Sequence record: MT135025.1
Strand: one strand, 5' to 3'
DNA: 64,000 nucleotides
The notes beneath the pieces were generated by a model. The model did not search any database, was not told where the DNA came from, and was given only the letters and a program-made list of their open reading frames with translations. Of this stretch, positions 8,553 through 41,167 are shown in pieces. Each line of letters starts with the position of its first letter. The first letter of the stretch is position 1. The position numbers and the translations under genes were made by a program.

Positions 8553-10934
8553 CTATTCTCCAATGTATAGATAACCAATACCTTTCGATTTGTACTTGTC
8601 GCGCATCTCTTTAGCGACAATTGTGCGAACGGTATCTTTAGATTCCATGTAACGCAATGCAGCGTTCATATGGTCTTCAACGTTACGACCACCACTATCC
8701 GCAAACAACTTGTTACGTCCAATCTTACGTGTTATGACAGAACGAGTAACAATACCATCCGCATGGACTTCCTTCTTGTATATCTTACGAATGGTTGCAG
8801 GTAAGTCCTCGTAAACAGTTGACAACAGACTAGACATAACGTTCTCAAGTAGTTCCGCACGACGTTGCGTTGTACCGTCCATCGTAACCTTACCACTTTG
8901 AACAGCATCCCAAACCAAATGGTTATGACGCAGAACATAGTCCCAAGCCCAGTTCATGTGCACTTCCGTAACCTTGGGCATAGTAGGATTATCCATCACT
9001 GCAAGCAGAGCTGATACTTTCATTACCTTCAAGTTAGTACGTGTCCATGTTGCATTCCATGCGTGCGATGTGTTCTGTTGGTTTACCATGTCCGTACAGT
9101 AGCGGGACAACGAGCGGAACTTCTCTGCAATGTCCGGTGGCAAAGCAATGGGCATAACATCCACATGGTTTACATCGCGTAACGCGGAGCTCATACAAAG
9201 CACAGCGTTAGTCATGTGGTCAATTAGTGCGGGACTAGGTCGCACACCCCTGTCAATGTTATCGTACGGTACATTACCATCAAACTCTGAGAAGATAAAG
9301 CGCGATACAAAACCATCACCAAACGCCTCTTCGTTTAAACAGTCATAGAACGTCTCTGGTACACACTCACCGAGGAAGCTGTAAGCAACCGCATGGTTAA
9401 TGTTAATCGTCTTTTCCATGTCTGTGTAACGAACACCACCTAGCACATCATAAGCACCAGACTTAGAGTATGTTTCAACCATTAAGTCTCGCACAGTACG
9501 GGTAGAACCGTCAGGGTTTACCATTGCGCGGAAGTGATTACCAAACTCTGATAAAGCGTGCAAGAAAGATGTATTCTCTTGGAACACTTTCATCATAGAG
9601 TTACGGTGTGTAAACGCTTCTGTGACCACAAACTTGCTTGCATCAATTACACCTTGCTCACGCTCCAGTAGACGCATAAACTCTTGAGGTGCTGCGGTTA
9701 ACTGTGACTTACCTGTACCCGATGGTGCTAACACCATGAAGTAATTGTTAAGACCAGTTCCACTGATGTTGTACGCACGACCAAACAGACCTGAAGCAAG
9801 GGATAAAGCTTCTGCAATAGCAAACTCTTTAATCTGCTTCACACCTGTAGCGTAGAAGTGACGTGCAAGTTCACCCATCCATCCTGGAGGGTAGTTGAGC
9901 TTACCTTGGAGCGGTGGCATCTGGTACTTTGGCTCAGCGTTACCCGTTTGCGCGTTAATATTGCGCTTCGCGTGTAACTCTTTTGCGAGTTTAGCACCTT
10001 CCTCAGCGTGGGCTTTGCGTAGCTCTTCGTCTTTCATGTTCTCAGTCGCCGCTTGTTTAATAGCTAAGTGTAACAGACGGTCGCTTCCTACATGGTTGCG
10101 TTTCTCGTGCTGCTTCTTACGGTTGCCGGGATAGCGAAGCTCAAGATTAGCAAGCGCAGACATACGCCACAAGCGTTTACACTGCTCAATGTTGCGTGTG
10201 TAGTACGTTACAATAGTCATAAACGCACTGTCAGCACGCGAGGCATCAAACACGTCAACACCGTGTGCACCCTGCTGTTTCATAATCTCAAGGTACTTGT
10301 CCCAATCACCCGTCATAAGGCATTCAAACTTACCACTGTGGTCATATGCGTAAACCTCATTGAGTAGATCAGTGTCACTCATCTTCTCAGGTTCATCAAT
10401 GTCCGCAATGTTGTCTACCTTACGGGATTGCGAGATGTATTGGTTAAACTGGTCAATAAGACCTTGGTCGTAACGAATGTCGTATCCAAGAATAACATTA
10501 CCCGTACAAATAATGAAACGTTCCTTGGAGTACAACTCAAGTCCACCACGCTTGTATGAACCGTCAATCTCACCACCAAACCATAAGTGATAACCCCCAC
10601 CTGAGCGGGAAGCCTCGGTATAGGTTTCATAAGACTGTACAGCGTTCCACCATTGCTCAGTAGCTTCAACGGATGTATCGTCGCCAATATCAATGTCCGC
10701 TACTGTAAACCCGTCACCCTGTGTAAGGACAAAGCCAAAGCCACGTTCGGGGTGCTGTGCAAGCAAGGGTAAAAGTTCTTCATAACTAATAAGCTTGTTG
10801 TGGTCGCTAGTTACCGAAATCGGGACGAACTTACCGTCCACATAAGCAAACGGAGCCTTAGCCATCCCGCCATCATGTTCTGTGCCTGTAAAGCACCAAC
10901 GACGCAGTTTCTTCAACTGCCAAGGCATATCCAT
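8553..10934 (-). CDS. bifunctional primase-polymerase (AEP) fused to DUF3987-like P-loop domain
   Basis: GFGFVL..DID, YTEASRSGGGYH, LELYS..RF..CTG; D.SRAD primase C-terminal domain; APSGTGKS. Confidence 0.85.
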   Translation of the reverse strand: MDMPWQLKKLRRWCFTGTEHDGGMAKAPFAYVDGKFVPISVTSDHNKLISYEELLPLLAQHPERGFGFVLTQGDGFTVADIDIGDDTSVEATEQWWNAVQSYETYTEASRSGGGYHLWFGGEIDGSYKRGGLELYSKERFIICTGNVILGYDIRYDQGLIDQFNQYISQSRKVDNIADIDEPEKMSDTDLLNEVYAYDHSGKFECLMTGDWDKYLEIMKQQGAHGVDVFDASRADSAFMTIVTYYTRNIEQCKRLWRMSALANLELRYPGNRKKQHEKRNHVGSDRLLHLAIKQAATENMKDEELRKAHAEEGAKLAKELHAKRNINAQTGNAEPKYQMPPLQGKLNYPPGWMGELARHFYATGVKQIKEFAIAEALSLASGLFGRAYNISGTGLNNYFMVLAPSGTGKSQLTAAPQEFMRLLEREQGVIDASKFVVTEAFTHRNSMMKVFQENTSFLHALSEFGNHFRAMVNPDGSTRTVRDLMVETYSKSGAYDVLGGVRYTDMEKTININHAVAYSFLGECVPETFYDCLNEEAFGDGFVSRFIFSEFDGNVPYDNIDRGVRPSPALIDHMTNAVLCMSSALRDVNHVDVMPIALPPDIAEKFRSLSRYCTDMVNQQNTSHAWNATWTRTNLKVMKVSALLAVMDNPTMPKVTEVHMNWAWDYVLRHNHLVWDAVQSGKVTMDGTTQRRAELLENVMSSLLSTVYEDLPATIRKIYKKEVHADGIVTRSVITRKIGRNKLFADSGGRNVEDHMNAALRYMESKDTVRTIVAKEMRDKYKSKGIGYLYIGE

Positions 10935-10938
10935 TCAC

Positions 10939-11256
10939 TTAACCTCGCATCTTAATCCAAGCTTGAATGTACTCCATCATGTCGTCAGTACGTAACCAGT
11001 ACCAAGAGTTGCCAATCTTAAACTTCGGATACTTACGAAGCTTGTTAGTAACGCTAACAGGGGTAACATCAACCATCTGGCAAATGTCAGCAACGGAAAT
11101 ATACAGGGCGTTAAATAACTCCTGGCCATCATACTTCTCGCGGATGTATGTTAGCATGTCCGCTTCACTCATGCTCGGCAAAGCCATGTCAGTTGGGTTG
11201 CCACGTTCGAAAGGTTGTTCCGTTGTACCGACCACATTATTGTTTACAGCTACCAT
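10939..11256 (-). CDS. putative HTH DNA-binding protein
   Basis: YISVADICQMVDVTPVSV..K..FKIGNSWYW winged-HTH-like pattern. Confidence 0.55.
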   Translation of the reverse strand: MVAVNNNVVGTTEQPFERGNPTDMALPSMSEADMLTYIREKYDGQELFNALYISVADICQMVDVTPVSVTNKLRKYPKFKIGNSWYWLRTDDMMEYIQAWIKMRG

Positions 11257-11361
11257 TGTTTATTCCTCTTTGCGTTCAATGTATGCGGTTTATTATAAGC
11301 GCATAGTTTTAGTTAACAAGACAACCCTGTGGTTTATTGTGACCACATTACTGTCAGCTAT

Positions 11362-11545
11362 TTATAATGTGCAGAGTATTGGTACTGCTGAATAACACTA
11401 CTCTTTACAATGCACAGAGCACTGGCCTCGCAAGAACATGCGCTTTATTAATAAACCGCAGAGCACTTGCTTAGCAGTGCATGGGTACGCTTTATATATT
11501 ATGTGCAGAGCACTGGTCACGCAAGACAAGGGTTGCTGAAGGGTA
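11362..11545. repeat. four imperfect ~44 bp direct repeats (iteron-like)
   Basis: Core CAGAG(C/T)A(C/T)T(G/T)G at 11372, 11415, 11459, 11506, each after an AT-rich tract. Confidence 0.6.
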
Positions 11546-11824
11546 ACTTAAATTGTGCTATATGGCTAATAAGCAGAGTTTATGTTTATTGCTTTACTTT
11601 CTGTTGTTAATTTAGTTTGCTTTAGTTGCTGTCCATAGGGTTGTGCTTGCAGGTATATAAAGTTTGCGTAATTATATGCGTGTTGTTCGCGTAGTGGGAA
11701 ATAGTTCTGTGCAAAAAAAACGCAATTGCTGCCCGAGTTGCGCCAGTGGATAACCCGTTTTTTGTGTGCAAAAACAGGGGGTTACAAGTAAGTGCTGCAA
11801 TTGCGCAAAAAAACGAGGGGGGGG

Positions 11825-12155
11825 GTAAATCTAAGAATCTCAGGGCCTGACTTTGTGGCTACCAAAAAGCAATAACACTAGTAGGTAATAATAGCAGACT
11901 ATAAGCAATTATATTCATATACAATGTGAGAGCGTTGAGCGTATGAAGTTTGAAATGGCTAATCAGCTTAAAGATCTTGCAGAGCGTAAGCGTGCGAAGA
12001 AAGCGGGTGAAGAGCCAGACCGCGTTATCTTCTTCATTGAAGACCGAACATCCAATCGTCAGCACCCGCGTTAGCATCTGAGCCACCGCCGAAGTTGTAC
12101 GCACCAGATTCAGTTTTCCATCCCTCTGCGATAGCAGTGATGTAAGCCGACTTAT
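11825..12155. other. junction S1/phage A with short unrelated fragments
   Basis: G-run, then two unrelated partial ORFs on opposite strands, then the 3' end of a phage A gene (IDALGLTVEDFRAEV...AA*). Confidence 0.6.
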
Positions 12156-12254
12156 TGACGCACTAGGTCTAACTGTTGAAGATTTCCGTGCGGAAGTTAA
12201 AAACGCTGTAGACGTTGAAAACAATGAACAACAAGTAGATAAGGCTGCTTAAAA

Positions 12255-12443
12255 ATGAAAGCTACCCAAAAAGTACATCGCACGTCTCAATTTCCTCAAG
12301 GTGGTTGGCGTGTCCGTGATAATACTATGTATTCGTCTTTTAAGCGTTCTAAACAAGCACGTAAGGCTGTCAAACGCTATAAGCAATGCAATGGTATATC
12401 TAATGCAACAAAAGCTCTTAGCGAGGCTTTGAGAGCGTTGTGA
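12255..12443 (+). CDS. hypothetical early protein (basic)
   Basis: 62 aa ORF. Confidence 0.6.
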   Translation: MKATQKVHRTSQFPQGGWRVRDNTMYSSFKRSKQARKAVKRYKQCNGISNATKALSEALRAL

Positions 12444-13380: not shown

Positions 13381-13854
13381 ATGCGCAAGTTCTTCTATCT
13401 ATTCATAATCGTCTACGTTATCTTATCAATTTTCTTCACTTACAAGGCTGTAGCTGGTGAGAATGATGAAGTAAAGGTGATGTTTGCAGGTTTTTCGCAT
13501 CATATTGGTGCGCCTGATTATGCAGACCATAACGAAAAGCACAATTTGGTAGGTATTTCGTACAATGACACTGAGATTTTCTTTATGAAGAACTCATTTC
13601 ACAACGATTCTGTAGGGATTGCGCATAATTTTACTTATTCTTACAGCCAATACTTGGATTTTGGATTCCGTGTTGGTGCTGCAAGTGGCTATGATATTGA
13701 TGGAATATACAATGTAGGCGGTATTGCACCGTTTGCACAGCCAAATGTGACGGTAAAATACAGTAATTTAGGGGTTGAGTTGGGATATTTACCTCAATTT
13801 AGCCATTCAACGCCGTATGGAGCGGTAACATTAACATTTAATTGGAGCTTATAG
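13381..13854 (+). CDS. predicted outer-membrane beta-barrel protein (PagP-like)
   Basis: Sec signal peptide (MRK + hydrophobic stretch + AVA), alternating beta pattern, SHH..N..N..G, NSF, GAASGY, C-terminal LTFNWSL. Confidence 0.6.
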   Translation: MRKFFYLFIIVYVILSIFFTYKAVAGENDEVKVMFAGFSHHIGAPDYADHNEKHNLVGISYNDTEIFFMKNSFHNDSVGIAHNFTYSYSQYLDFGFRVGAASGYDIDGIYNVGGIAPFAQPNVTVKYSNLGVELGYLPQFSHSTPYGAVTLTFNWSL

Positions 13855-14098: not shown

Positions 14099-15583
14099 AT
14101 GAAGATTGAAGATATTGTAATTGGTCAAGAATACCGTATCGTTCGTAAAGGTTTGGTAAATACTGGTCGTATTGGTCGTGCTGTAGGTAAGAATGGCTTC
14201 AAAGTCAAACTTCTAATGCACCACAACAATGCTGAGCTTACACTTAATGCCATGTCTGTTGAACCAGTTGAAAAAGGCGTGAAAGCTAAGAAACAAGTTG
14301 ACGTTAACGAAAACCGTAAACCTGTTGACAATGAGCTTGTTAAGCCTAAGAAGAAACCAGCTAAGAAGTTCGTAGAACGTGATGTACTTATCGAACCTGC
14401 CGAAGATGCAGTGGTTCTAATTGAACAAAATGGTGCTGTGGTATCGGTATCAAGAAGAAACTTAGAGTTCTTTGATGACCGTTTGATGTCTCATGGACGT
14501 GATTTCACCAAAGAGTATATAGGCTTCATCCCTCGTGGTGCTAAGTTTAAGGTTAATAAGCCTGATAACATCATGGAATATCCCTTTTGGAATGATGACG
14601 ACATGCAAGACGGCATGGAACTTACATTCAAAAATTGGCGTAATGACTTCGGCTCTACAATACTAACGACTGAAGAAAACTTTGACATTCTAGCTAAATG
14701 GATTGACCGTACTACTCTGCACAAAATGGGTAAGGCTAAGGTTGAAGTTGACAACAATGGTAATGAAGTAATTCCACCATTGGAAGAACAAGCTCTTAAA
14801 CGCATGGAAAAGGATGCTAAAGAAGCTAGCGGTCTTGCATTCGCTCTTTACTGGGATTACCGTGGCAAGCTTGAGTCTGGCACTCGTAACCATGCAGCAT
14901 GTCACTACCACATGCGCTGTTTCGTTGATGGTGACAAGCGTAAAGATGCTAAGGCATTGTTTGCAGCCCAATTCATCACTGAACACTATTACGTCAATAT
15001 AAAGAAAGAACTTGTTGACCGTTACCTAACTTGGGTAATGAATGACTCTCCGTGGTCTGATTACATTGTCACTAAAGATTTGGCTGAGGGTAAAGAGAAA
15101 GGTATCCGTGTTCGCACTGATATTCCAGCTAATGCAATGATGTGTACATTCTACGCTCTGCGTTATCCTACTGAATACTGTGGAGTAATCACTCTGTGGG
15201 GACGTTATACGGACGAAGGCTTAGACCCTACTATTGCCTTCTATAAAGCTGAAACTCGTGGCTATGACCGTGACACGGCTTCTCACCACGGCTTGTTGGA
15301 CACATTCTCAATGACATTGCAAGATGTGATTGATTTTGCCAACAAGAAACGTGGTAAGATTGTTGATGAAATCTATGGTGTTAAATACTTCAACTACAAG
15401 AACGTGTCTGTACACCACGGCTCATCTGTAAACCGAGATGTTAAGACTGCTCTTACTGAACTTAAAGATAAGTTTAAGCCTAAGAAAGTCAAAGAAAAAC
15501 ACCCTGTTCTGGGCGAAATTGAGAAAGAAATCGCTGCAACAGAGCAAATCGACCAATTCCTAACTAGCAAACTGGAGAAATAA
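14099..15583 (+). CDS. large hypothetical protein (494 aa)
   Basis: Long ORF, AGGA RBS, N-terminal KOW/SH3-like segment. Confidence 0.8.
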   Translation: MKIEDIVIGQEYRIVRKGLVNTGRIGRAVGKNGFKVKLLMHHNNAELTLNAMSVEPVEKGVKAKKQVDVNENRKPVDNELVKPKKKPAKKFVERDVLIEPAEDAVVLIEQNGAVVSVSRRNLEFFDDRLMSHGRDFTKEYIGFIPRGAKFKVNKPDNIMEYPFWNDDDMQDGMELTFKNWRNDFGSTILTTEENFDILAKWIDRTTLHKMGKAKVEVDNNGNEVIPPLEEQALKRMEKDAKEASGLAFALYWDYRGKLESGTRNHAACHYHMRCFVDGDKRKDAKALFAAQFITEHYYVNIKKELVDRYLTWVMNDSPWSDYIVTKDLAEGKEKGIRVRTDIPANAMMCTFYALRYPTEYCGVITLWGRYTDEGLDPTIAFYKAETRGYDRDTASHHGLLDTFSMTLQDVIDFANKKRGKIVDEIYGVKYFNYKNVSVHHGSSVNRDVKTALTELKDKFKPKKVKEKHPVLGEIEKEIAATEQIDQFLTSKLEK

Positions 15584-15584
15584 G

Positions 15585-16277
15585 ATGGACATGGATAAAC
15601 TACCGCAAATTATGAAAGTTATGGTCGTGGGTTCTGGTATGAACCTCGACTACCATCGTATGCTTAACGACATGGGTCACACAACAGTGGCTTGTCGTTA
15701 TGTTGAGCAAATCCGTCCAATCTTGTACAAAGGTGATATTGATGTTGTATTATTTGTGGGTGGGGCTGACGTTAATCCTGAGCTTTATGGTCATACGTTA
15801 CATCCCACGTCCGGTATTTCTAAAGCCGAAGATGAGTTATACCAGCAAGCTTTCTGTCAAGCTCAAGAATTTGATGAAATCAAGTTTGTGGGTATTTGCC
15901 GTGGTAGTCAGTTCTTGTGTGCTGCTAGCGGTGGGGTTCTTGTTCAACATTGTGATAATCACGCTGTGTTTAATGGGCATAGTGTTGAAACTAAGTGGGG
16001 TCACGAATTTAATGTCACATCGACGCACCACCAAATGCAAGACCCACGGGAAGTGGAACACGAACTAATCGCTTGGACTAAGCGTACTACGTTCAAAGAT
16101 TACCACATTGATGGTGAGACAGTTACCATTGAAACTCAGGCAGACCCCGATGAGCTGGATATTGAAGTTGTTTGGTATCCACATACTAAGTCGTTAGCTT
16201 TCCAGCCACATCCTGAATTTGCAGGAGCTGGTGAGACACTAGCATTGTTTAAACGTTGTTGGAATGAGTACATGTAA
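15585..16277 (+). CDS. class I glutamine amidotransferase (peptidase C26-like)
   Basis: GGADVNPELYG, GICRGSQ (catalytic Cys), HHQ, FQPHPEF (His-x-Glu). Confidence 0.9.
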   Translation: MDMDKLPQIMKVMVVGSGMNLDYHRMLNDMGHTTVACRYVEQIRPILYKGDIDVVLFVGGADVNPELYGHTLHPTSGISKAEDELYQQAFCQAQEFDEIKFVGICRGSQFLCAASGGVLVQHCDNHAVFNGHSVETKWGHEFNVTSTHHQMQDPREVEHELIAWTKRTTFKDYHIDGETVTIETQADPDELDIEVVWYPHTKSLAFQPHPEFAGAGETLALFKRCWNEYM

Positions 16278-16480
16278 TGCAAAATGTAAGAATTGAACTA
16301 GAGGGTGGTTGCACTTTTGGTTGTGTAGCTGTAGGTGATGTGTTCCTTTACAACAATACCCCATACATCAAACTAAATAATGACCCATGCTTAAACTGTA
16401 AGAAGTTTGGTACTGTAGGAACTGGTACTATCTCTAAAAGCACTCGTGTTATTGTTCCTGAAGAAATTATCATTAAATAA
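16277..16480 (+). CDS. small hypothetical protein
   Basis: TAATG coupling. Confidence 0.65.
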   Translation: MQNVRIELEGGCTFGCVAVGDVFLYNNTPYIKLNNDPCLNCKKFGTVGTGTISKSTRVIVPEEIIIK

Positions 16481-16711
16481 GGCAGGTAGTTATGAAGCTG
16501 GATACAAGTTAGAAATGTAAATGATTACTGGGGTGGATTCCATGTTTATTTGTAGATATTTAATTAATTACAGCTTTGTGTGTGATTGGATGAATTCTCC
16601 TTACCACCCCAGTGGTTATCCTTATTAGTATTAAGTAGTATTAATAAAAATAACTTAGTTATTAGCGATAGCAAGGCTATCAATCTGTAAAACCATTCTC
16701 TTGTATGAGAC

Positions 16712-16740
16712 ATACTAACACAAAAAAGTGTCACTGTCAA
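16712..16740 (-). promoter_or_regulatory. antisense sigma70 promoter
   Basis: Minus strand TTGACA-gtgacacttttttgtgt(17)-TAGTAT; shares TTGACAGTGAC with the promoters at 21602 and 24016. Confidence 0.65.
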
Positions 16741-16778
16741 GAGGTAAATCAATGAAAGTTAAGAAAAGGTATTAAATT

Positions 16779-18131
16779 ATGTGTGGAATTGTAGGCGTTG
16801 TAGGTCTTATCACGGCAAACGAAGAAAAAGTATTCAAGCAGTTACTTGAAGTTGACTCTCTACGTGGTCGTCATTCGACTGGCGTTATTAAGCTTTCTTC
16901 TGGAGGTGTAGTAGAGACACGAAAGAAAGCGATTGATGGTATGGACTTTGTTAAGCTTGAGGGCAACTGGATTTCATCTGGTGTTAACCGTATGCTTATC
17001 GGTCATAACCGCTATGCAACTCGTGGTGGTGTTAATGATGCTAATGCTCACCCATTCTCACATGGACACATTCACGGTGTTCATAATGGTACATTAACTA
17101 CCCAACTTGGTTTGAAAGACCAACATAAATTCCCTGTTGATTCTGATAACCTTTTCTACGATATGGCACATGGTAGTCTACGTGAAACAGCTAAGAAAAT
17201 CTCAGGTGCTTGGACTGTTGCGATGTATGATGAACAAGAGAAAACGTTTAACATGTTCCGCAACACTGAGCGTCCAATGAGCGTTGCTCTCTCGGAAGAT
17301 GGTACAGTTATGTACTTCGCTAGTGAAGCCACTATGCTTGAGTGGGTTCTTGACCGTAATAATGTTAAGTACAAAGACATTCTTAACCTAACTCCAGCTA
17401 AGCTGATTACTATCGAACCTACTGCTGTTGCAAATGCTGACGGTAAACGTGTTCCTGATTTGATGTCTATTACTGACATTGAATACAAGAAAGTTCCTGC
17501 TGCCCCGGCTCGTGGTGCAAAAAAGTTCCTTTCAGACTTCGGGTTAAATATCCAAAAAAAGTATCCAATTTCTTTAATCAACAGAAAGAAAACAAATGCA
17601 GGGTACGAGTATGAAGTTGAGCTTATGATTCCTCCATACAACTCTTGGACTGTATACGCTTACCAACCTAAGACTGCGGAAGTTCTTAGTAAGTTGTACG
17701 ACAATGACGAGATTGCATGTTCTGTGTTAACTATTGGTTACTCATCTAACATGCCACACTGCTGGGGTATGGATATTGAGCCAGCTACGGAAGAAGCTCT
17801 TAAAATCCTTGCGGATGAAGAAGCAGCAGCGGCAGCGGCTGTAATTGACCAAAACGATGTTGATGATTTGACAGAAGATGAGCTTAGTCAAATCTTTGAT
17901 GCTTATGGTATCACCCAAATCAAAAAGGAATGGTATGACCACAATGGTTTAGCTATGACAGAAGCTGAGTTTGAAAAGACTCAAGCAGGTCAGCATGGCT
18001 GTTGTATGTGTGGCGACCACTTCCAAGAACCAGAAGATGTAGTGTGGAACGATGATGGCGACACTGCATTTTGTACAGACTGTGTAGAAGCATACAACGC
18101 TATTTACGGAACTCAAGCACAATCTAAGTAA
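16779..18131 (+). CDS. class II (Ntn) glutamine amidotransferase with C-terminal acidic/Zn-ribbon extension
   Basis: MCGIVG, RG.HSTG, GHNRYATRG, NAHPF, HNGTL, DS; CCMC...CTDC. Confidence 0.92.
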   Translation: MCGIVGVVGLITANEEKVFKQLLEVDSLRGRHSTGVIKLSSGGVVETRKKAIDGMDFVKLEGNWISSGVNRMLIGHNRYATRGGVNDANAHPFSHGHIHGVHNGTLTTQLGLKDQHKFPVDSDNLFYDMAHGSLRETAKKISGAWTVAMYDEQEKTFNMFRNTERPMSVALSEDGTVMYFASEATMLEWVLDRNNVKYKDILNLTPAKLITIEPTAVANADGKRVPDLMSITDIEYKKVPAAPARGAKKFLSDFGLNIQKKYPISLINRKKTNAGYEYEVELMIPPYNSWTVYAYQPKTAEVLSKLYDNDEIACSVLTIGYSSNMPHCWGMDIEPATEEALKILADEEAAAAAAVIDQNDVDDLTEDELSQIFDAYGITQIKKEWYDHNGLAMTEAEFEKTQAGQHGCCMCGDHFQEPEDVVWNDDGDTAFCTDCVEAYNAIYGTQAQSK

Positions 18132-18158
18132 TTCACTAACAGAGAGAGAGATTTAATT

Positions 18159-19007
18159 ATGTCAAATTCAGTATTCGGTAAAGTAACACTAGGCGCAGAC
18201 CCAGAAATCTTCTTAGTAAAACCTGATGGTACTCCTTGGGGTGCATTAACTACTGGCTGTAAAGGTACTAAAGAAGTGCCTGAGCCTACAGAGTACGGTG
18301 CATTACAAGTAGATGGTCTAGCTCTTGAATACAACATTCATCCAGTTGACAAATTAGAAGATTGGCTTGACCTGCACACAGCAGCTTTAACACATATTGC
18401 TGACACAGCAGATAAAGCTGGTCTTGAAATTGACTCAAGCTCTCGTTTGGACTTTACCTCATACATTGATGGTAACGGTGCCACTGAAGATGAGTTACTA
18501 TTCGGTTGTGACCCTGACTTTAACGCAGACACAATGGAAGAAAACACCATGCCAGATAACGATGGTTCTATCAAGTTCCGTACTACTGGCGGTCATGTTC
18601 ACATCGGTCTAGCAAACTGGGGTGAGTTGCACGGTGGTGATGATAAGATTGCACACATGATGGCATCTAAAATCATCTTTGTATGTGACGCAATCCTTGG
18701 TCTACGTTCTGTCCTAACAGATGATGGTGTAGCTCGTAAAGAATTGTATGGTAAAGCTGGTGCTTACCGTGTTAAACCTTACGGTGTTGAATACCGTACA
18801 CTATCAAACTTCTGGCTATTTGATGAAGAAGAAATGAAGTTCATCTTTGATGCACTAAACAATATCTTTGCATCTGATGCTGAGTTTGAACGTGTGTCAG
18901 AGTTTGCAACACTAAACCGTGCTGACATTGTTAAAGCAATCAACACGAACGACAAAGAGCTTGCTATCAAGCTACTAGCTGGTGACGCCCCATTAACTGA
19001 TAAATAA
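18159..19007 (+). CDS. phiEco32-like COOH-NH2 ligase type 2
   Basis: LGADPEIFL, DG.ALEYNI, GCDPDFN, RTTGGHVHIG, YGKAGAYRVKPYGVEYRTLSNFW. Confidence 0.92.
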   Translation: MSNSVFGKVTLGADPEIFLVKPDGTPWGALTTGCKGTKEVPEPTEYGALQVDGLALEYNIHPVDKLEDWLDLHTAALTHIADTADKAGLEIDSSSRLDFTSYIDGNGATEDELLFGCDPDFNADTMEENTMPDNDGSIKFRTTGGHVHIGLANWGELHGGDDKIAHMMASKIIFVCDAILGLRSVLTDDGVARKELYGKAGAYRVKPYGVEYRTLSNFWLFDEEEMKFIFDALNNIFASDAEFERVSEFATLNRADIVKAINTNDKELAIKLLAGDAPLTDK

Positions 19008-19018
19008 AGGAGTACCAA

Positions 19019-19615
19019 ATGAAGAACTTCCATGATAATGCACACGCTAATAACCGACTATCCCGTTGCTTTGTGTGCATTAAGATTAATGGCAAGTGGG
19101 TAACTAAACGTATTGCAGAAGCAACTAAGCAAAATATCATCTGCCGTGATGGTGAGGTTTACCCACTACATAGTGATGATGTTAAGATTACGTTTGATAA
19201 CTTAGGTTATGTTAACACTCAACATCAAGCTATCTTCGTAAGCCGTACTCCTAAGCGTATGTGGAAAGCTGGTCTGGTTCCTGAGAACATTCAGGCAGAA
19301 CACATTCACCCACAGCATCTACGCCACGGCGACATGGTTGAGTTTGACAAGTGTCTAGACAAGTTGATGAACAATGTATATCCATCTTACCGCATGGCTT
19401 ACCTGCGAGTTAAGAACGGCAAGTGTGCAGCATCAGCTTTCCATCGTAACTTCGCTGTATCCTTGAGCGACTTTACAGAACATTTGGTTCTTTACTATAA
19501 GAACTACGAAATCGGATTCATTGATAATGATTCTGAACAAATTGTGGTGGGTGATTCTTACACCCATCTACGTGAACAAATCTTTGAAGCAACAGGTATG
19601 GAGTGTATCTCATGA
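19019..19615 (+). CDS. conserved hypothetical protein of amidoligase cluster
   Basis: AGGAG RBS; lies between the two ligase genes. Confidence 0.75.
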   Translation: MKNFHDNAHANNRLSRCFVCIKINGKWVTKRIAEATKQNIICRDGEVYPLHSDDVKITFDNLGYVNTQHQAIFVSRTPKRMWKAGLVPENIQAEHIHPQHLRHGDMVEFDKCLDKLMNNVYPSYRMAYLRVKNGKCAASAFHRNFAVSLSDFTEHLVLYYKNYEIGFIDNDSEQIVVGDSYTHLREQIFEATGMECIS

Positions 19616-20457
19616 AGAAAATCGCAGACATCTTTAAACTAAAACGTCCTCGCAATGATGACTCTTTTGGTGTAGAGCTGGAACTTGAGTATAACAACCG
19701 TCCTGCTGCCTCAGATGAGTGGAAAATGGAGCATGATGGCTCTCTGCGTGTCGCTGGTATCGAATACGTAATGAGAGAGCCTATGAGCCTAGCTGATAGT
19801 AAAGTAGCTTTACAGAACCTCTCAGACAAGTTCAAAGCTGTTAAGAACAACCCAAAAGCTACCAACTTGGCATCATCTCATATCCACATCAACGTCTCTC
19901 ACATGACGTTACAAGAGTTTATCCAGTTCGTTAGTCTTGTACTGCTATTCGAACCACACATCGGTAAGCATGGTGGTCAAGACCGTTGGATGAACTACTT
20001 TGCAGTGAGTTCACAAGAGAGTGGCATCCTAATTCGTGAGTTGTTAAAAGTGCGTACCGAAGAACAGTTCGCTAAATTCATCTTACGAGTAAATCAGCGT
20101 GACTGGCGCTACAACGGGATTAACTTTGCATCTGTGGCAAAGTATGGCTCGCTTGAAATTCGCTACTTAGGGGCTATGCCAGAGCCTCTGGATGTTATTC
20201 CTTGGCTTGAGTTCTACGATACACTTCGTGAAGCTGCAATGAATGACATTCAATGGGGTATGGTATTTGAAACAGTATCAGCAGGTGAGACATTCTTACT
20301 TGAGGGTACATTCAAAACTCCATTCCCTCTAAATCAAGATGACCTACTACTTGGTGCTCGTATGGCACAAGATTTGGTCTACCCAGTATACCATGATGCA
20401 AAAGGCGCTCCTTTCGCAGAAACATGGAAACTTACTAACTACTACGCAAACGTATAA
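19603..20457 (+). CDS. putative amidoligase (Amidoligase_2, COOH-NH2 ligase fold)
   Basis: FGVELELE, HDGSL, E.V, S.HIHIN, RY..INF, LEIR. Confidence 0.88.
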   Translation: MYLMKKIADIFKLKRPRNDDSFGVELELEYNNRPAASDEWKMEHDGSLRVAGIEYVMREPMSLADSKVALQNLSDKFKAVKNNPKATNLASSHIHINVSHMTLQEFIQFVSLVLLFEPHIGKHGGQDRWMNYFAVSSQESGILIRELLKVRTEEQFAKFILRVNQRDWRYNGINFASVAKYGSLEIRYLGAMPEPLDVIPWLEFYDTLREAAMNDIQWGMVFETVSAGETFLLEGTFKTPFPLNQDDLLLGARMAQDLVYPVYHDAKGAPFAETWKLTNYYANV

Positions 20458-20470
20458 AGGAAATTTAAAC

Positions 20471-21598
20471 ATGGCTATTAAACTACACGCTTACAAAAAC
20501 GGTTCTGAATCTGCTAAGGCACTTCGTGATGCACTAGGTATTAAGATGTTATTACCTGCCGGTAAAGGTAAATGGAAAGGTAAAGCTGGTGACAAACTAA
20601 TCAACTGGGGTTGTTCTACACCACATCCAAACAAAGGTCTAGCTACCTACGTTAACACACCAGAAGCAGTACGAAGTGCAGCTAACAAGCTGATTACACA
20701 GCAACGTTTTGATGCAACTCCTGCAATGGCTAATCATACATTGCCTTGGACAACAGAACGTGTTACGGCACACCAGTGGATTGAGAACGGCGATACAGTA
20801 GTATGTCGTCAGAAACTGACTGGTAACTCTGGCGAGGGTATTGTAATCGCTGAGAAAGTGGAAGACCTTGTTGATGCTCCTCTGTACACTTTGTACAAGA
20901 AGAAGAAAGATGAGTTCCGTGTTCACGTCTTTGATGGTGAAATCATTGATGTTCAGCGTAAGGCTCGTAAACATGAAGTAGAAGATGACAAAGTTAACTG
21001 GAAAGTGCGTAACTTGGACGGCGGTTTCATCTTCGCTCGAAACAATGTTATCGCTCCTGTTGTTGTCCGTCAGGCTGCTGTTGAAGCTGTTAAAGCTTTG
21101 GGTCTGGTTCATGGCGCTGTTGACATTGGTCATGGTCGTCATGGGACTTACGTTTACGAAGTTAATACCGCTTGCGGTCTCGCTGGGTCAACCTTGGTTA
21201 CTTATGCTAAGGCATTTGCTAAGTACCTAGGCATGGACGAAGATAAACTAAAACTAACTAAGGAGCAGTTAGACAATTACGTACCGATGAATGAAGGCAA
21301 TAAGCTTATAGCACTTGCTCAACCTGAGATTGAACCACTCCCACAAGAGGCTCAGGTTGGTGCCGGCATTGATGTTGGTCGTCCAATAGCTCAAGTTGAA
21401 CAAGAAATAGCAGCAGCTATTGAAGCACAAGAGGAAGAAGCGGAAGAAGAAAAACCTCTACATGTACAAGAGTTCGGCAAAAACAAACTCCAAGTTACTA
21501 TCAACTTAAGACAAAAAGATGTACGCATTCTTTTTGGTAATGCTGAATTAACTATTACTCGTGACAACTTCGCAAAAGTTGTACAGGCACTGAAATAA
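20471..21598 (+). CDS. ATP-grasp ligase with acidic C-terminal extension
   Basis: INWG, NKL, G.SGEGI, EFRVHV, NL.GGF, GAVDI, YEVNTACGL; start MAIKLH after an AGGA RBS. Confidence 0.88.
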   Translation: MAIKLHAYKNGSESAKALRDALGIKMLLPAGKGKWKGKAGDKLINWGCSTPHPNKGLATYVNTPEAVRSAANKLITQQRFDATPAMANHTLPWTTERVTAHQWIENGDTVVCRQKLTGNSGEGIVIAEKVEDLVDAPLYTLYKKKKDEFRVHVFDGEIIDVQRKARKHEVEDDKVNWKVRNLDGGFIFARNNVIAPVVVRQAAVEAVKALGLVHGAVDIGHGRHGTYVYEVNTACGLAGSTLVTYAKAFAKYLGMDEDKLKLTKEQLDNYVPMNEGNKLIALAQPEIEPLPQEAQVGAGIDVGRPIAQVEQEIAAAIEAQEEEAEEEKPLHVQEFGKNKLQVTINLRQKDVRILFGNAELTITRDNFAKVVQALK

Positions 21599-21601
21599 TA
21601 C

Positions 21602-21631
21602 TTGACAGTGACGCAAATAAGGTGGTAGACT
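21602..21631 (+). promoter_or_regulatory. sigma70 promoter
   Basis: TTGACA-N18-TAGACT with TG extension. Confidence 0.55.
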
Positions 21632-22119
21632 TGTTAGACGATAAAGAAAAAGTTCTGATTCCTAATGAGCTTCTTCCGCCTAAGTATCAAAATAAAGGTT
21701 ATCGGATGAGTTCTGATGGCTCTGTGTACGGGGTGTATGGTAAGAAGCTACGCCCCAATGATTACTCGCCAAATGGTTTTAACCATCCGATGCTTTTCAA
21801 CCGTAACTTATGGTACATTCGAGCAGCCATGTTCGTCCCTAACCCTAATAACTACAAAAGGGTTGTCGAGATTGACAACGAAGTTCACTGGCTGAGTGAA
21901 AAGAAATACCGAGAAATGGTTGCTAAATACTTAGGTCGTGAAGTAGTGGAGCGAAAGCCCTTGAATGATTGGGGTGGGGTATTGATAGAAATGCTTGAAA
22001 AGGGAACACGCATAGCTGATGTAGCTAAGGCTCTTGGCTATTCCCGTGCAGCAATCTACAAATACCTAGAGAAGAATAACTATGAATACAAAAACCGTAG
22101 ACTTAAAAAACGAAAGTGA
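21622..22119 (+). CDS. putative DNA-binding protein (degenerate NUMOD4/HNH-like N-terminus plus C-terminal HTH); start uncertain
   Basis: Y.MSSDG.V..., MFVPNPNNY; RIADVAKALGYSRAAIYKYL HTH. Confidence 0.55.
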   Translation: MVDLLDDKEKVLIPNELLPPKYQNKGYRMSSDGSVYGVYGKKLRPNDYSPNGFNHPMLFNRNLWYIRAAMFVPNPNNYKRVVEIDNEVHWLSEKKYREMVAKYLGREVVERKPLNDWGGVLIEMLEKGTRIADVAKALGYSRAAIYKYLEKNNYEYKNRRLKKRK

Positions 22120-24149: not shown

Positions 24150-24226
24150 CTGTGTGTAGCTCAGTCTGGTAGAGTGTTAGCTTTGGAAGCTTAGGGTCGT
24201 AGGTTCAAATCCTGCCACACAGACCA
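24150..24226 (+). tRNA. tRNA-Pro(TGG)
   Basis: Acceptor CTGTGTG/CACACAG, loop TT-TGG-AA, GGTTCAAATCC, encoded CCA. Confidence 0.9.
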
Positions 24227-24234
24227 AATTAAAT

Positions 24235-24309
24235 ACTTCTGTGGTAGAGAGGCTCTTACATTCGGCTGATAACCGAAAGACGTTGGTTCGAATCCAACCA
24301 GAAGTACCA
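24235..24309 (+). tRNA. tRNA-Ile(GAT)
   Basis: ACTTCTG/CAGAAGT, TTCGG-CT-GAT-AA-CCGAA, GGTTCGAATCC, CCA. Confidence 0.88.
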
Positions 24310-24315
24310 AATTAA

Positions 24316-24415
24316 AGGAAGGATAAGCCGAAAGATTCTGGGTAGCGGCAGCGGTCTTGAAAACCGAAGGTTACAGTGATGTGACGTCAGGGTTCGAATC
24401 CCTGTTCTTCCGCCA
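24316..24415 (+). tRNA. tRNA-Ser(TGA)
   Basis: CGGT-CT-TGA-AA-ACCG, long variable arm, GGTTCGAATCC, GCCA. Confidence 0.85.
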
Positions 24416-24420
24416 GTTTT

Positions 24421-24507
24421 AGAGGGTTGACAGAGTGGTTTAATGTATCGCACTGCTAATGCGACGTCCGAAAGGATGCATGGGTTCGAATCCCATACCC
24501 TCGGCCA
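24421..24507 (+). tRNA. tRNA-Ser(GCT)
   Basis: TCGCA-CT-GCT-AA-TGCGA, variable arm GTCCGAAAGGAT, GGTTCGAATCC, GCCA. Confidence 0.88.
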
Positions 24508-39544: not shown

Positions 39545-39658
39545 CACTAAATCATTTGATGATACAGAAGCGTGACCGAAGTGAGTGTCGCTCGTAAATG
39601 TGATTGTAGTCATAATTTTCTCTTTCGTTGTTTCGTTTCGATAGACACATATTATCGC
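39545..39658 (-). other. foreign fragment: B-type promoter leader plus start of a metallophosphoesterase-like ORF
   Basis: Reverse strand ATCGAAACGAAAC..GAGAAAATT-ATG then MTTITFTSDTHFGH. Confidence 0.6.
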
Positions 39659-40168
39659 CATCTTACTCCTTTTCGTCACACTTCAGTCACTATTCGATGC
39701 AAGGAGCCTATCTTCCTTGCCCGTCAGCTAGGTAAACATCAAGCTGGCTTGAGCTGGAATGAAGTGTCACGACGTTACGTAAAAGGTGATGCAGAGTTTC
39801 ATGTTCCATCAGCTTGGCGACTAGCTCCTGATGGTAGTATCAAACAGGGCAGTGCAGGTGTGCACCCTAGCTCTGGTCAATTCTCTGCTGCTTACAAAGA
39901 CTTCATCAACAAAGCAGAAGATTTCTACAACAGCTTGATTGAAAATGGCGTTGCTCCTGAGCAAGCCCGTATGGTTTTACCACAGTCAATGCTAACTGAG
40001 TGGGTTTGGACTGGTAATCTGCTAGCTATGGCTCATATCTACCGTGAACGAATTGCATCTGGAGCACAACTTGAAGCACAATACTTCGCAAGAAAACTGG
40101 ACGACGCCTTACAGCCGCTTTTCCCTGTGGCTTGGGCAGCGCTTACAAAACCTAACGCAATCAAATAA
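39659..40168 (+). CDS. thyX: flavin-dependent thymidylate synthase ThyX, 5'-truncated
   Basis: H.TPFRH, PIFLARQL.KH, SWNEVSRRY, PEQARMVLPQS, AQLEA. Confidence 0.92.
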   Translation, partial: HLTPFRHTSVTIRCKEPIFLARQLGKHQAGLSWNEVSRRYVKGDAEFHVPSAWRLAPDGSIKQGSAGVHPSSGQFSAAYKDFINKAEDFYNSLIENGVAPEQARMVLPQSMLTEWVWTGNLLAMAHIYRERIASGAQLEAQYFARKLDDALQPLFPVAWAALTKPNAIK

Positions 40169-40178
40169 GGAAACAAGT

Positions 40179-40403
40179 ATGGCAACTGTAGACATACGCA
40201 ATCATGGCGCTAAAATAGATGGTATAGTGTTTGCAGATAAAGAGGGCGGCGAGGGTCGCCTCTATAAGCTGGAGCGTTTTGTACCTGTACAATTTCACCT
40301 CGTAACATCTAGCGGAATGAGAGTCCATGTAAAAATGGATGATGTTGACAACCTTATTGAAGCCCTAAAGGCAGCTAAAGAGCTTTGGGGCAAAACAAAT
40401 TAA
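40179..40403 (+). CDS. hypothetical protein
   Basis: AAGGA RBS, start MATVDI. Confidence 0.65.
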   Translation: MATVDIRNHGAKIDGIVFADKEGGEGRLYKLERFVPVQFHLVTSSGMRVHVKMDDVDNLIEALKAAKELWGKTN

Positions 40404-40417
40404 ACGAGAGAAAAATC

Positions 40418-41167
40418 ATGGAAAATAGAAAGCACTTCTTCGGTAACTTTAAAAAGATTATCGACAGCTTGGTAGTAGACACCCACCCACATAGTGAAAA
40501 TGGCGGTGTTGTAGTAGTTGCGGGGGGTTTCCTCCGTGACTTACACCTAAGACGACAACCTAAAGATATTGACATCTTCTTTAGTGGTCCACAGTCGTCA
40601 CAAACTATCTTTAAGCATTTAAAGGAGAAGAACCCTGAACTGTTTAAAGACTGCAAGCATAAGTTCTACTGTGATGAAAACTATGGTATGGAAGAAGAAG
40701 AAGTTAAAGGTAACTTTGCTGTCTACGACCTAGTTAAAGTTGAACTTACAAATGGTTTAAACATTGACATCATTGCAACACAACGTGTGTGGGAACAGCC
40801 TTGGGAGTTATTAGGCAACCACTTTGATTGTAACTTAAACGCCCTAGCATATGATGGTCAGACTTTGTTTGCACCTAATGGTATGCCTAACAAGGATGGT
40901 ATCTTCTTCCCTCTTGGCGGTGCATACATTGACAACCAAGTTACTAAAGAGCGTATGATTCGCTTAGTACAGAAAGTTCCTTTCGGTAATTTCCAAGCCT
41001 TTAGTCAGTTCTTCCCTAATGATTGGGATGAGATTCTAGAAGCACGTAAGAAAGCACAAGAAGCTGAACGCAAAGAACTGGCGAAAGCAGCACAAGCTGA
41101 AGCCGCAGCAATGGCAGCGGTAGTACCAGGAATTATTCAAGACGAAGCAGCACAACTGGAGTTTTAA
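40418..41167 (+). CDS. nucleotidyltransferase (CCA-adding/poly(A) polymerase head-domain-like)
   Basis: VAGGFLRD....PKDIDIF (GG..RD..DxD), IDII, FD..LN.LA. Confidence 0.8.
   Translation: MENRKHFFGNFKKIIDSLVVDTHPHSENGGVVVVAGGFLRDLHLRRQPKDIDIFFSGPQSSQTIFKHLKEKNPELFKDCKHKFYCDENYGMEEEEVKGNFAVYDLVKVELTNGLNIDIIATQRVWEQPWELLGNHFDCNLNALAYDGQTLFAPNGMPNKDGIFFPLGGAYIDNQVTKERMIRLVQKVPFGNFQAFSQFFPNDWDEILEARKKAQEAERKELAKAAQAEAAAMAAVVPGIIQDEAAQLEF

Follow-up and report, generated by a model that had tools for sequence, protein, structure and literature searches.

The virus-specific amidoligase gene set of the phiEco32/LUZ24 type in Vibrio phage DNA: a VPp1-type copy and its possible role as an early amide-bond assembly line

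The gene set and its enzymes

The stretch of DNA analyzed here (the window, positions 1-64000) is the end of the 349-kb record MT135025.1, titled 'UNVERIFIED_ORG: Vibrio phage V07'. At positions 15585-21598, a span with 100% DNA identity to that record, it carries five enzyme genes, all complete and all on the + strand, with a gene for a 198-amino-acid (aa) protein lodged between two of them. The region is very likely a VPp1-type version of the virus-specific amidoligase gene set of the phiEco32/LUZ24 type, and the genes very probably act as a single amide-bond-forming unit of this known phage kind. A first-pass annotation of the sequence had listed all five enzymes, which are indeed present, but it overlooked the 198-aa open reading frame (ORF), which belongs to the core of the set, and a 67-aa ORF. 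The main genes of the span are the following.

15585..16277, + strand: C26-type enzyme with the class I glutamine amidotransferase (GATase) fold, 230 aa; Peptidase_C26, PHROG 7218 (2e-74)
16779..18131, + strand: class II (N-terminal nucleophile, Ntn) glutaminase, 450 aa; GATase_6 (1.6e-13), PHROG 4736
18159..19007, + strand: COOH-NH2 ligase type 2, a glutamine-synthetase-like carboxylate-amine ligase, 282 aa; PF14395, PHROG 3815
19019..19615, + strand: 198-aa ORF of the LUZ24 gp17 family, between the two ligase genes; PHROG 11055 (7.2e-81)
19612..20457, + strand: Amidoligase_2, a glutamine-synthetase-like carboxylate-amine ligase, 281 aa; PF12224, PHROG 7469
20471..21598, + strand: putative RimK-like ATP-grasp ligase, 375 aa; PHROG 2599 (7.8e-113)

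The five enzyme genes and the 198-aa ORF are under purifying selection. Compared with two relatives, the ratio of nonsynonymous to synonymous substitution rates (dN/dS) is 0.00-0.26 for these six genes and for two genes upstream, which encode a 494-aa protein and a protein resembling an outer-membrane protein (OMP-like). Because the genes are intact, their residues conserved and dN/dS low, the cluster is real and not a chance arrangement. That the catalytic motifs are intact in all five enzymes, as the first-pass annotation had it, is borne out by family scores and residue conservation.

The 230-aa protein matches Pfam Peptidase_C26 with 53.7 bits (3.2e-14; cut-off 20.5) and the classical GATase model PF00117 with 19.9 bits, under the cut-off of 22.8. 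It carries a G-I-C-R-G elbow and an H-P-E motif, and each member of its Cys-His-Glu triad (C105, H209, E211) is kept in at least 85% of 63 homologs. Weak NCBIfam matches point to PuuD and gamma-glutamyl-CDP-amidate hydrolase, with scores far under the family cut-offs (24 bits versus 250, and 17 versus 266).

The class II enzyme begins with MCGIVG, which identifies Cys2 as its Ntn nucleophile. Among 82 homologs, C2 is kept in 83%, the remainder being gaps from ORF calling, and the glutaminase core (R29, G30, H76, R78, N103, G104, D121 and S122) is at least 85% conserved. Residues 200-400 are hypervariable or gapped in the same alignment, and four cysteines that form a Zn-ribbon-like C-terminal CxxC...CxxC (C408, C411, C432 and C435) are kept in 63-77%. 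No synthase (acceptor) domain of the kind found in GlmS, PurF or AsnB follows the glutaminase, and residues 208-450 contain no Pfam domain. Because the glutaminase is followed by nothing conserved until the Zn ribbon, this enzyme cannot finish an amidotransferase reaction alone. The CxxC pairs recur in the class II enzymes of LUZ24, Kuravirus, Grimontviridae and Rhizobium phages, and the class II enzymes of the set have one to three Zn ribbons each.

Both ligases retain the characteristic acidic, His and Arg positions of their class, the glutamine-synthetase-like carboxylate-amine ligases. The 282-aa ligase scores 31.4 bits against PF14395 (cut-off 25) and 3.8e-91 against PHROG 3815; it is 35% identical to LUZ24 gp16, and its invariant residues include GxDPE, QxD, E57, H146/H148, R193 and YGxEYR. 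The 281-aa Amidoligase_2 scores 27.1 bits against PF12224 (cut-off 22) and 1.4e-108 against PHROG 7469, matches LUZ24 gp18 by BLASTP at 1e-8, and conserves ExExE, H90/H92, E114, R125, E182 and R184. Sequence and profile searches of the PDB returned no usable relative of either ligase.

The 375-aa protein conserves the ATP-grasp residues K73, GxG121-123, E148, K164, D218, E230 and N232. Its NCBIfam matches to rimK_fam (2e-8; 33.9 versus 143.4 bits) and MptN (2e-8) are both far under cut-off, as are its 16.8 bits against an S6-glutamate ligase model with a cut-off of 331; its Pfam R2K matches are also under cut-off, and a weak PDB match is to the alpha-L-glutamate ligase 7qys (E 0.014). We therefore describe the protein as RimK-like, with a resemblance that falls below the family-level score for RimK itself. 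Residues 255-375 form a lineage-specific C-terminal extension of ~120 aa that is missing in ~90% of homologs. The acidic tail previously ascribed to this enzyme is an internal stretch (residues ~308-327) within that extension and not the terminus.

By BLASTP, the class II and ATP-grasp proteins match LUZ24 gp19 (5e-36) and gp21 (2e-26), respectively, and the four enzyme families match proteins of LUZ24, Bas89 and Cronobacter phages at E values of 1e-8 to 1e-44. PADLOC returned no match among the cluster proteins. In the 298-nt gap at 16481-16778, which follows the 67-aa ORF, Rfam, promoter and terminator scans found nothing convincing; a weak hairpin lies at 16603-16616.

The protein between the ligases

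The gene for the 198-aa protein is tied closely to its neighbors, with a stop that overlaps the Amidoligase_2 start by 4 nt. An ORF of 188-204 aa fills the matching slot in LUZ24, Kuravirus, Grimontviridae and Zobellviridae phages. BLASTP of the 198-aa, 494-aa and 67-aa proteins against the neighbors of the LUZ24, Bas89 and Cronobacter-phage genes found nothing, and comparing shallow profiles of the 198-aa and gp17 families yielded an E value of 0.035. With 66 and 10 sequences in the two profiles, hhalign aligned the 198-aa and gp17 families over 155 columns with 98.4% probability (E 6e-15), and a third divergent subgroup in the same slot was linked with 98.0% probability. The 198-aa family comprises 1397 representative clusters in a library of 1.84 billion proteins; among the best 150 clusters, nearly all members are stand-alone proteins of ~180-230 aa.

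An AlphaFold2 model of the protein built from a 147-sequence alignment reached a predicted local distance difference test (pLDDT) score of 96.8 and a predicted template modeling (pTM) score of 0.89, compared with a pLDDT of 61.8 from 9 sequences. In the model, the N- and C-terminal parts are rich in beta-strands. Foldseek found no solved relative of the model in the PDB (best E 0.1, TM score at most 0.22), and the weak resemblances that it listed are all to tandem Tudor/SH3-like modules. Matches in BFVD are uncharacterised phage proteins only, and sequence and profile searches of the PDB with the family gave no usable relative. Only G63, N66, R76, R80, G85, A140 and G166 are conserved at 90% or more of the family. 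Because these seven strongly conserved positions are all Gly, Asn, Ala or Arg, the family suggests a binding or scaffolding role rather than a catalytic one. The 198-aa/gp17 family thus emerges here as an obligatory partner of the ligases with a fold that has no solved relative.

The crAss-like phages differ at this point. Their Amidoligase_2 proteins (at 10747-12294 of locus L006 and 10275-11735 of locus L007) carry an extra N-terminal region of ~170-220 aa, in one case ~380 aa, and neither locus has a separate gene of the 198-aa/gp17 type. In a profile comparison, this extension gave no match to the 198-aa/gp17 family.

Distribution and gene order

The COOH-NH2 ligase type 2 occurs in 319 phage records and 434 IMG/VR loci. 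Phages that bear it include Bruynoghevirus, Kuravirus and its relatives, Grimontviridae, Aeromonas and Vibrio phages, crAss-like Steigviridae, Zobellviridae and Rhizobium phages. A pattern-seeded scan of cellular genomes found 15 matches among 185,579 species, represented by one genome each; most are on contigs of metagenome-assembled genomes, several of them phage-sized. The gene set is almost virus-only. We then took a profile-based census of 89 loci, 88 of which entered the gene-order count, with the following occurrences.

COOH-NH2 ligase type 2: 89/89 loci
Amidoligase_2: 87/89 loci
Class II enzyme: 84/89 loci
ATP-grasp enzyme: 83/89 loci
198-aa/gp17 family, in the slot between the ligases: 75/89 loci, or 81/89 including the third subgroup
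Class I/C26 enzyme: 64/89 loci
GGCT: 40/89 loci
494-aa family: 29/89 loci
DUF7195: 10/89 loci
OMP-like protein: 4/89 loci
67-aa ORF: 4/89 loci

A C26 enzyme, a GGCT or both are present in 85 of the 89 loci (both in 19, C26 only in 45, GGCT only in 21, neither in 4). The 19 loci with both rule out mutually exclusive substitution of one for the other as a strict rule. GGCT, present in only 40 loci, is accessory to the set and does not define it, and a GGCT profile had no match in the whole 64-kb window.

The sole invariant adjacency is that of the ligase, the 198-aa gene and Amidoligase_2, and the other genes move around this triad. The ligase is followed directly by the 198-aa gene in 67/88 loci and the 198-aa gene by Amidoligase_2 in 72/88, mostly with overlapping ends. 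We looked for domain fusions among the families of the set and found none. The same core order is present in LUZ24, the Kuravirus Bas89, and Grimontviridae, Zobellviridae, crAss-like and Rhizobium phages, which upholds the first-pass assignment of the set to the phiEco32/PaP3-like kind. The same annotation regarded this version as distinctive in having both GATase classes and a Zn ribbon, a view that the census contradicts: the class I enzyme is found in 64 loci, CxxC pairs are common, and the order in the window (494-aa, class I, class II, ligase, 198-aa, Amidoligase_2, ATP-grasp) is the commonest of the 89.

The copy analyzed here is therefore an ordinary, already deposited example of an already described kind of gene set, and it adds nothing new by itself. 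The span is 92-97% identical in DNA sequence to ~50-kb Vibrio podophages of the VPp1/KIT05/IME234/IME271/BA6 type, and the records of these phages already annotate the same genes as glutamine amidotransferase, COOH-NH2 ligase type 2, amidoligase and ATP-grasp genes. New in the present analysis are the definition of a five-gene core and three further findings: its glutaminase is without an acceptor domain, nearly all loci encode an enzyme of a gamma-glutamyl-cleaving type, and the distribution is virus-only.

Neighboring genes

Three further ORFs lie upstream of the enzyme genes or among them.

13381..13854, + strand: 157-aa OMP-like ORF with a signal peptide; PHROG 3600 'PagP' (lipid A acylation), 3.6e-46
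14099..15583, + strand: 494-aa protein, ending 1 nt before the class I gene; PHROG 38092 (function unknown)
16277..16480, + strand: 67-aa ORF with four cysteines; no family match in Pfam or PHROG

The 494-aa gene is a real accessory member of the set. Of the 29 loci that hold it, 23 have it directly upstream of the class I gene, and most of the remaining loci have a GGCT gene between the two or in place of class I; this synteny supports the link to the cluster that had been proposed at first pass. The N-terminal half of the protein varies, whereas the C-terminal half is conserved and rich in Cys and His; the invariant residues of its family include E359 and the pairs C268-H269, H396-H397 and H439-H440, which suggests a metal-binding or thiol enzyme of an undescribed family. 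It has no Pfam or PDB match. Its 19 relatives include several on phage-sized contigs of ~48-51 kb, and dN/dS is 0.13-0.23. Comparison of the family with the ~300-aa proteins upstream of the ligase in other lineages gave weak signals (15-21% probability).

The link proposed for the OMP-like gene fared less well, since it accompanies the set in only 4/89 loci and is a weakly linked neighbor. It lies upstream of the set in two unrelated Vibrio phage lineages, and a longer form stands in that position in the unrelated Zobellviridae Vibrio phage 275E43-1. Its dN/dS is 0.09-0.22. The protein had no Pfam match at E values up to 1 and no PDB match at E values up to 10. Its identification as the lipid A palmitoyltransferase PagP, for which the PHROG label is the sole support, was not confirmed; neither the Pfam PagP model nor the PDB was matched. 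The 67-aa ORF, 33% identical in amino acid sequence to its counterpart in locus L010, has a dN/dS of 0.25-0.62 and probably lies outside the conserved set as a fast-evolving gene.

Downstream of the cluster, a 165-aa HTH_7 ORF (window 21622-22119) fills the slot of an annotated HNH endonuclease in IME234. HNH/homing endonuclease genes occur in or beside the cluster in several lineages (L004 7475-8786; L008 7553-8011; L009 6197-6619), and the ligase gene of Bas89 is annotated as split around one. Insertion of such genes is typical of conserved, important phage genes.

The source record

The window is a mosaic in which VPp1-like podophage blocks are scrambled in order and orientation, and it looks like contigs of several phages joined together. 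Its pieces are listed below.

Window 1 to ~11.9 kb: BA3-like siphophage piece
Window ~12.0-23.5 kb: VPp1-like early block, which carries the cluster
After the early block: VPp1-like late genes, in an orientation opposite to that in intact relatives
Window 33.9-39.5 kb: piece of 5.7 kb, 98.8% identical to Schizotequatrovirus PVA8
Beyond the 39.5-kb junction: VPp1-like replication genes

In the intact relative IME234, the + strand carries early ORFans, the OMP-like gene, the 494-aa gene and then the cluster, which is followed by genes for HNH, MazG-like, ThyX, nucleotidyltransferase, primase/helicase, DNA polymerase, exonuclease and ribonucleotide reductase (RNR) proteins; the late genes are on the opposite strand. 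Restriction-site content follows the same partition of the window. All three stretches of VPp1-like DNA analyzed have 0 GATC sites, where 33-50 are expected per 11-18 kb stretch, and nearly lack GGCC. The GATC-free segments are 11974-33945 and 39521 to ~54000. Because the foreign pieces keep normal GATC and GGCC counts, the boundaries of the mosaic can be read from the GATC map. GATC and GGCC are depleted in IME234 as well, which in addition has 0 CGCG.

Several other features of the VPp1-like DNA were seen. Genes for tRNA-Pro, tRNA-Ile and tRNA-Ser cluster at 24150-24507, and between the Ile and Ser genes a sub-threshold match to the Rfam tRNA-Sec model (24317-24411; 35.7 bits versus 47) received no call from ARAGORN. 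The 39572-41167 region holds a ThyX-type thymidylate synthase gene, its 5' end apparently truncated by the ~39.5-kb junction, and a PolyA_pol-head (CCA-adding-like) nucleotidyltransferase gene, both just upstream of the primase/helicase gene. Kuraviruses own a comparable nucleotidyltransferase, for which the BASEL authors suspect a role in DNA modification.

Discussion

The phage amidoligase gene set was reportedly described by computational means by Iyer et al. in 2009, and the Pfam family name itself records a computational description in phiEco32-like phages. Our search of the literature available to us found no functional study, with no measured product, substrate or phenotype for any member, in keeping with the first-pass statement that no product is settled. 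In the Kuravirus SU10, the ATP-grasp, GATase and GGCT-like proteins were seen by mass spectrometry and listed as early gene products (PMC4281155).

We tentatively favor, with a probability of roughly 0.4, an early-expressed cytoplasmic amide-bond assembly line, driven by ATP and glutamine, that works through a gamma-glutamyl intermediate and has a soluble small product or acceptor. ATP-grasp enzymes and glutamine-synthetase-like ligases join a carboxylate, which they activate with ATP, to an amine or to ammonia. Amidotransferase domains of the Ntn and triad types free ammonia from glutamine or hydrolyze gamma-glutamyl amides; C26 and GGCT enzymes cleave gamma-glutamyl amides, the characterised ones acting on soluble gamma-glutamyl compounds. 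From this background we infer every chemical step of the scheme, the complex that would carry it out and the nature of its substrate. The gene triad of ligase, 198-aa protein and Amidoligase_2 probably forms one complex. Each of the two ligases would use ATP to activate a carboxylate for coupling with an amine or with ammonia. The Ntn glutaminase, docked by means of its Zn ribbon, would provide the ammonia in trans. The ATP-grasp enzyme would add a glutamate-like amino acid, and the C26 enzyme or a GGCT would remove or recycle the gamma-glutamyl group. The product may be a small amidated pseudopeptide of the gamma-glutamyl type or such a group on a soluble acceptor. A soluble substrate is favored by the finding that nearly all loci (85/89) encode an enzyme of a gamma-glutamyl-cleaving type. 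The enzyme families thus agree with the earlier proposal of amide or gamma-glutamyl synthesis insofar as they point to ATP-dependent amide bonds and glutamine nitrogen; sequence, predicted structure and distribution do not decide among the targets that it offered (a peptide, peptidoglycan or a host protein).

Several observations count against this assembly line. Neither ligase family has a solved or characterised relative, so the ligase substrates cannot be read from homology. The virus-only spread, the obligatory non-catalytic protein with its small beta-rich parts and the Zn ribbons fit a macromolecular substrate at least as well. C26 and GGCT are not simple substitutes, since 19 loci hold both, and a genuine amidotransferase subunit that donates ammonia is an equally good reading of the C26-type enzyme.

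One macromolecular substrate to be weighed is DNA. The set could protect against restriction by placing an amino-acid or amide group on a base of the phage DNA or on a precursor deoxynucleotide, an alternative that we consider unlikely. The ligase/198-aa/ligase triad and the Zn-ribbon glutaminase would then form a virus-only writer of amino-acid or amide hypermodification, a proposal to which we give the same low credence, with the 198-aa protein as a nucleic-acid-binding adaptor and the Zn ribbon as a second nucleic-acid-binding part. Gene position is in line with such a role. In intact VPp1-type relatives the early ORFans precede the set, and the block of MazG, ThyX, nucleotidyltransferase, primase-helicase and DNA polymerase genes follows it, all on the same strand; it also adjoins replication genes in LUZ24, Kuravirus, crAss-like, Zobellviridae and Rhizobium phages. 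The virus-only distribution fits as well, and in viromes amidoligase and amidotransferase genes are co-associated with thymidine-hypermodification genes (Lee et al., PMC8989533). The BASEL study found Gordonclarkvirinae, which carry the set, to be restriction-resistant with no known modification pathway. Site avoidance does not account for resistance of this Kuravirus kind, because the Bas89 locus alone keeps 2 EcoRI and 5 EcoRV sites.

Against a DNA substrate, no enzyme that would form a reactive base was found, and the thymidylate synthase of the VPp1 type is ThyX. No hydroxymethylase, kinase or pyrophosphorylase was seen among the families within 10 kb in the 89 loci, and none is annotated in IME234; specifically, we found no 5-hydroxymethyl-dU (5-hmdU) enzyme, 5-HMUDK kinase or aGPT-type pyrophosphorylase, in a search that did not scan every small ORF. 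The zero GATC and near-zero GGCC counts of VPp1-like DNA also speak against this substrate, since such strict avoidance is unexpected if the DNA is broadly protected. For Kuravirus, the BASEL authors point instead to a dCTP deaminase and the nucleotidyltransferase, and the genes of the set are classed there as early and not with the replication (middle) genes.

The target might alternatively be a phage or host protein, to which the two ligases, along with the RimK-like one, would link glutamate or a short peptide in the manner of pupylation (PafA/Dop) or of RimK acting on S6. The 198-aa protein would serve as adaptor or target, and C26 or GGCT would reverse or trim the tag. We hold this to be doubtful, although several features suit it. 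The ATP-grasp enzyme is RimK-like, with weak Pfam matches to R2K, a clade for which protein modification in phage-host conflicts has been predicted (PMC4431377). An obligatory non-catalytic protein, the weak fold resemblances of which are only to Tudor/SH3-like binding modules, is flanked by two ligase-fold paralogs, and the genes are in the early, host-takeover class of Kuravirus. Tagging is harder to reconcile with the lack of a conserved small tag protein: the 67-aa ORF occurs in 4/89 loci and DUF7195 in 10/89, and in the 198-aa family neither an acidic nor a lysine acceptor is conserved, the positions kept being Gly, Asn, Arg and Ala only. In addition, PDB profile searches returned no PafA or Dop, and characterised GGCT-fold enzymes act on free gamma-glutamyl compounds and not on proteins.

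An envelope target is improbable in our estimation. In this scheme a peptidoglycan or envelope precursor would be edited, for example by amidation or extension of a stem-peptide carboxylate, which would block superinfection or tune lysis. Stem peptides do have a gamma-glutamyl link, and in some bacteria GATase-dependent enzymes amidate their carboxylates. An OMP-like gene with a signal peptide and the 'PagP' label lies upstream of the set in the two Vibrio phage lineages, but it is confined to 4/89 loci and fails the Pfam PagP model. No enzyme of the set matched Mur-ligase, MurT/GatD or AsnB family models, and the envelopes of the hosts (Bacteroidota, Pseudomonadota, OM43) are very different. 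Two citing papers attribute the cell-wall/superinfection idea to Iyer et al. 2009 (PMC10580990; PMC11318856).

Alternatively, the genes might have an auxiliary role in nitrogen or amino-acid metabolism, in which a gamma-glutamyl cycle or a glutathione-like pathway run by the virus would raise the nitrogen assimilation of the host or its redox supply, for instance to ribonucleotide reduction. This is very improbable: carboxylate-amine ligases, ATP-grasp enzymes and GGCT do resemble the enzyme types of glutathione synthesis and turnover, and RNR genes lie near the set in IME234, Grimontviridae and crAss-like phages, but the hosts already make glutathione and glutamine, the ligases nearly lack the cellular counterparts that host-borrowed metabolic genes normally have, NCBIfam gave no family-level match to GshA, GshB, GlnA or AsnB, and such a scheme leaves nothing to do for the Zn ribbon or for the obligatory non-catalytic partner. 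An eLife paper reads the same gene set in 'Phage-ZRK32' as a nitrogen-metabolism helper on growth effects only (PMC10945688).

Whichever substrate applies, the set takes up 6-7.5 kb of a ~50-kb genome. The sequenced phages that carry it number at least 319 and the virome contigs at least 434, while it is nearly absent from cells. These carriers include crAss-like phages of the gut as well as Pseudomonas and E. coli phages that were characterised for phage therapy. Solving the product would assign functions to two ligase families and to the large 198-aa family, and may reveal a new phage chemistry in the form of a metabolite, a protein tag or a DNA modification. If the DNA substrate proved true, it would explain the restriction resistance of Kuravirus and add a new chemical class of phage DNA modification. 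Descriptive chemistry is feasible because VPp1-like phages and their Vibrio hosts are culturable.

Comparison with known systems

The proposed assembly line can be set beside several characterised pathways. Polyamine catabolism by PuuA/PuuD, glutathione synthesis and turnover, and the BtrJ/BtrG steps of butirosin synthesis are gamma-glutamyl pathways that pair a glutamine-synthetase-like ligase with a C26 hydrolase or GGCT. The phage set shares with them a carboxylate-amine ligase, an ATP-grasp ligase and the C26 hydrolase or GGCT folds, with the weak NCBIfam match to PuuD in addition. It departs from them in that the phage ligases have no detectable similarity to solved glutamine synthetase, GCS or Puu enzymes, and the cellular pathways have neither a gp17-like partner nor a Zn-ribbon glutaminase. 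In two-component carboxylate amidation, such as that by MurT/GatD or AsnB-type enzymes, a glutaminase subunit works with an ATP-dependent ligase. The phage set likewise encodes an acceptor-less glutaminase beside ATP-dependent carboxylate-activating enzymes; unlike those systems, it yielded no sequence membership in the MurT/GatD or AsnB types, and pairing and ammonia transfer are predicted from the gene content.

Pupylation (PafA/Dop/Pup) and RimK/LysX glutamylation are comparable in their paired ligase-fold paralogues and RimK-like ATP-grasp enzyme. In contrast to these systems, the phage loci show no tag or carrier with a conserved acceptor terminus (a C-terminal Gln or Glu) and no small ORF conserved across loci. 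The thymidine-hypermodification clusters (PMC8989533) are similarly phage-only and adjoin replication genes, but they differ from the present set, in which, as in its linked families, no 5-hmdU enzyme, kinase or pyrophosphorylase was found.

With the phiEco32/LUZ24/PaP3 cluster the differences are of gene content and order. The window copy has no GGCT or DUF7195 gene and has instead the C26 enzyme and the 494-aa protein, both of which are common in marine and IMG/VR versions; its class II gene lies upstream of the gene triad and not downstream; and its 198-aa protein belongs to PHROG 11055, as opposed to PHROG 4877 in LUZ24, and is linked to gp17 by profile comparison only. Across these differences, the two share the same four enzyme families, the same triad of ligase, gp17-family protein and Amidoligase_2, and the same position in the genome, between the early ORFans and the replication genes.

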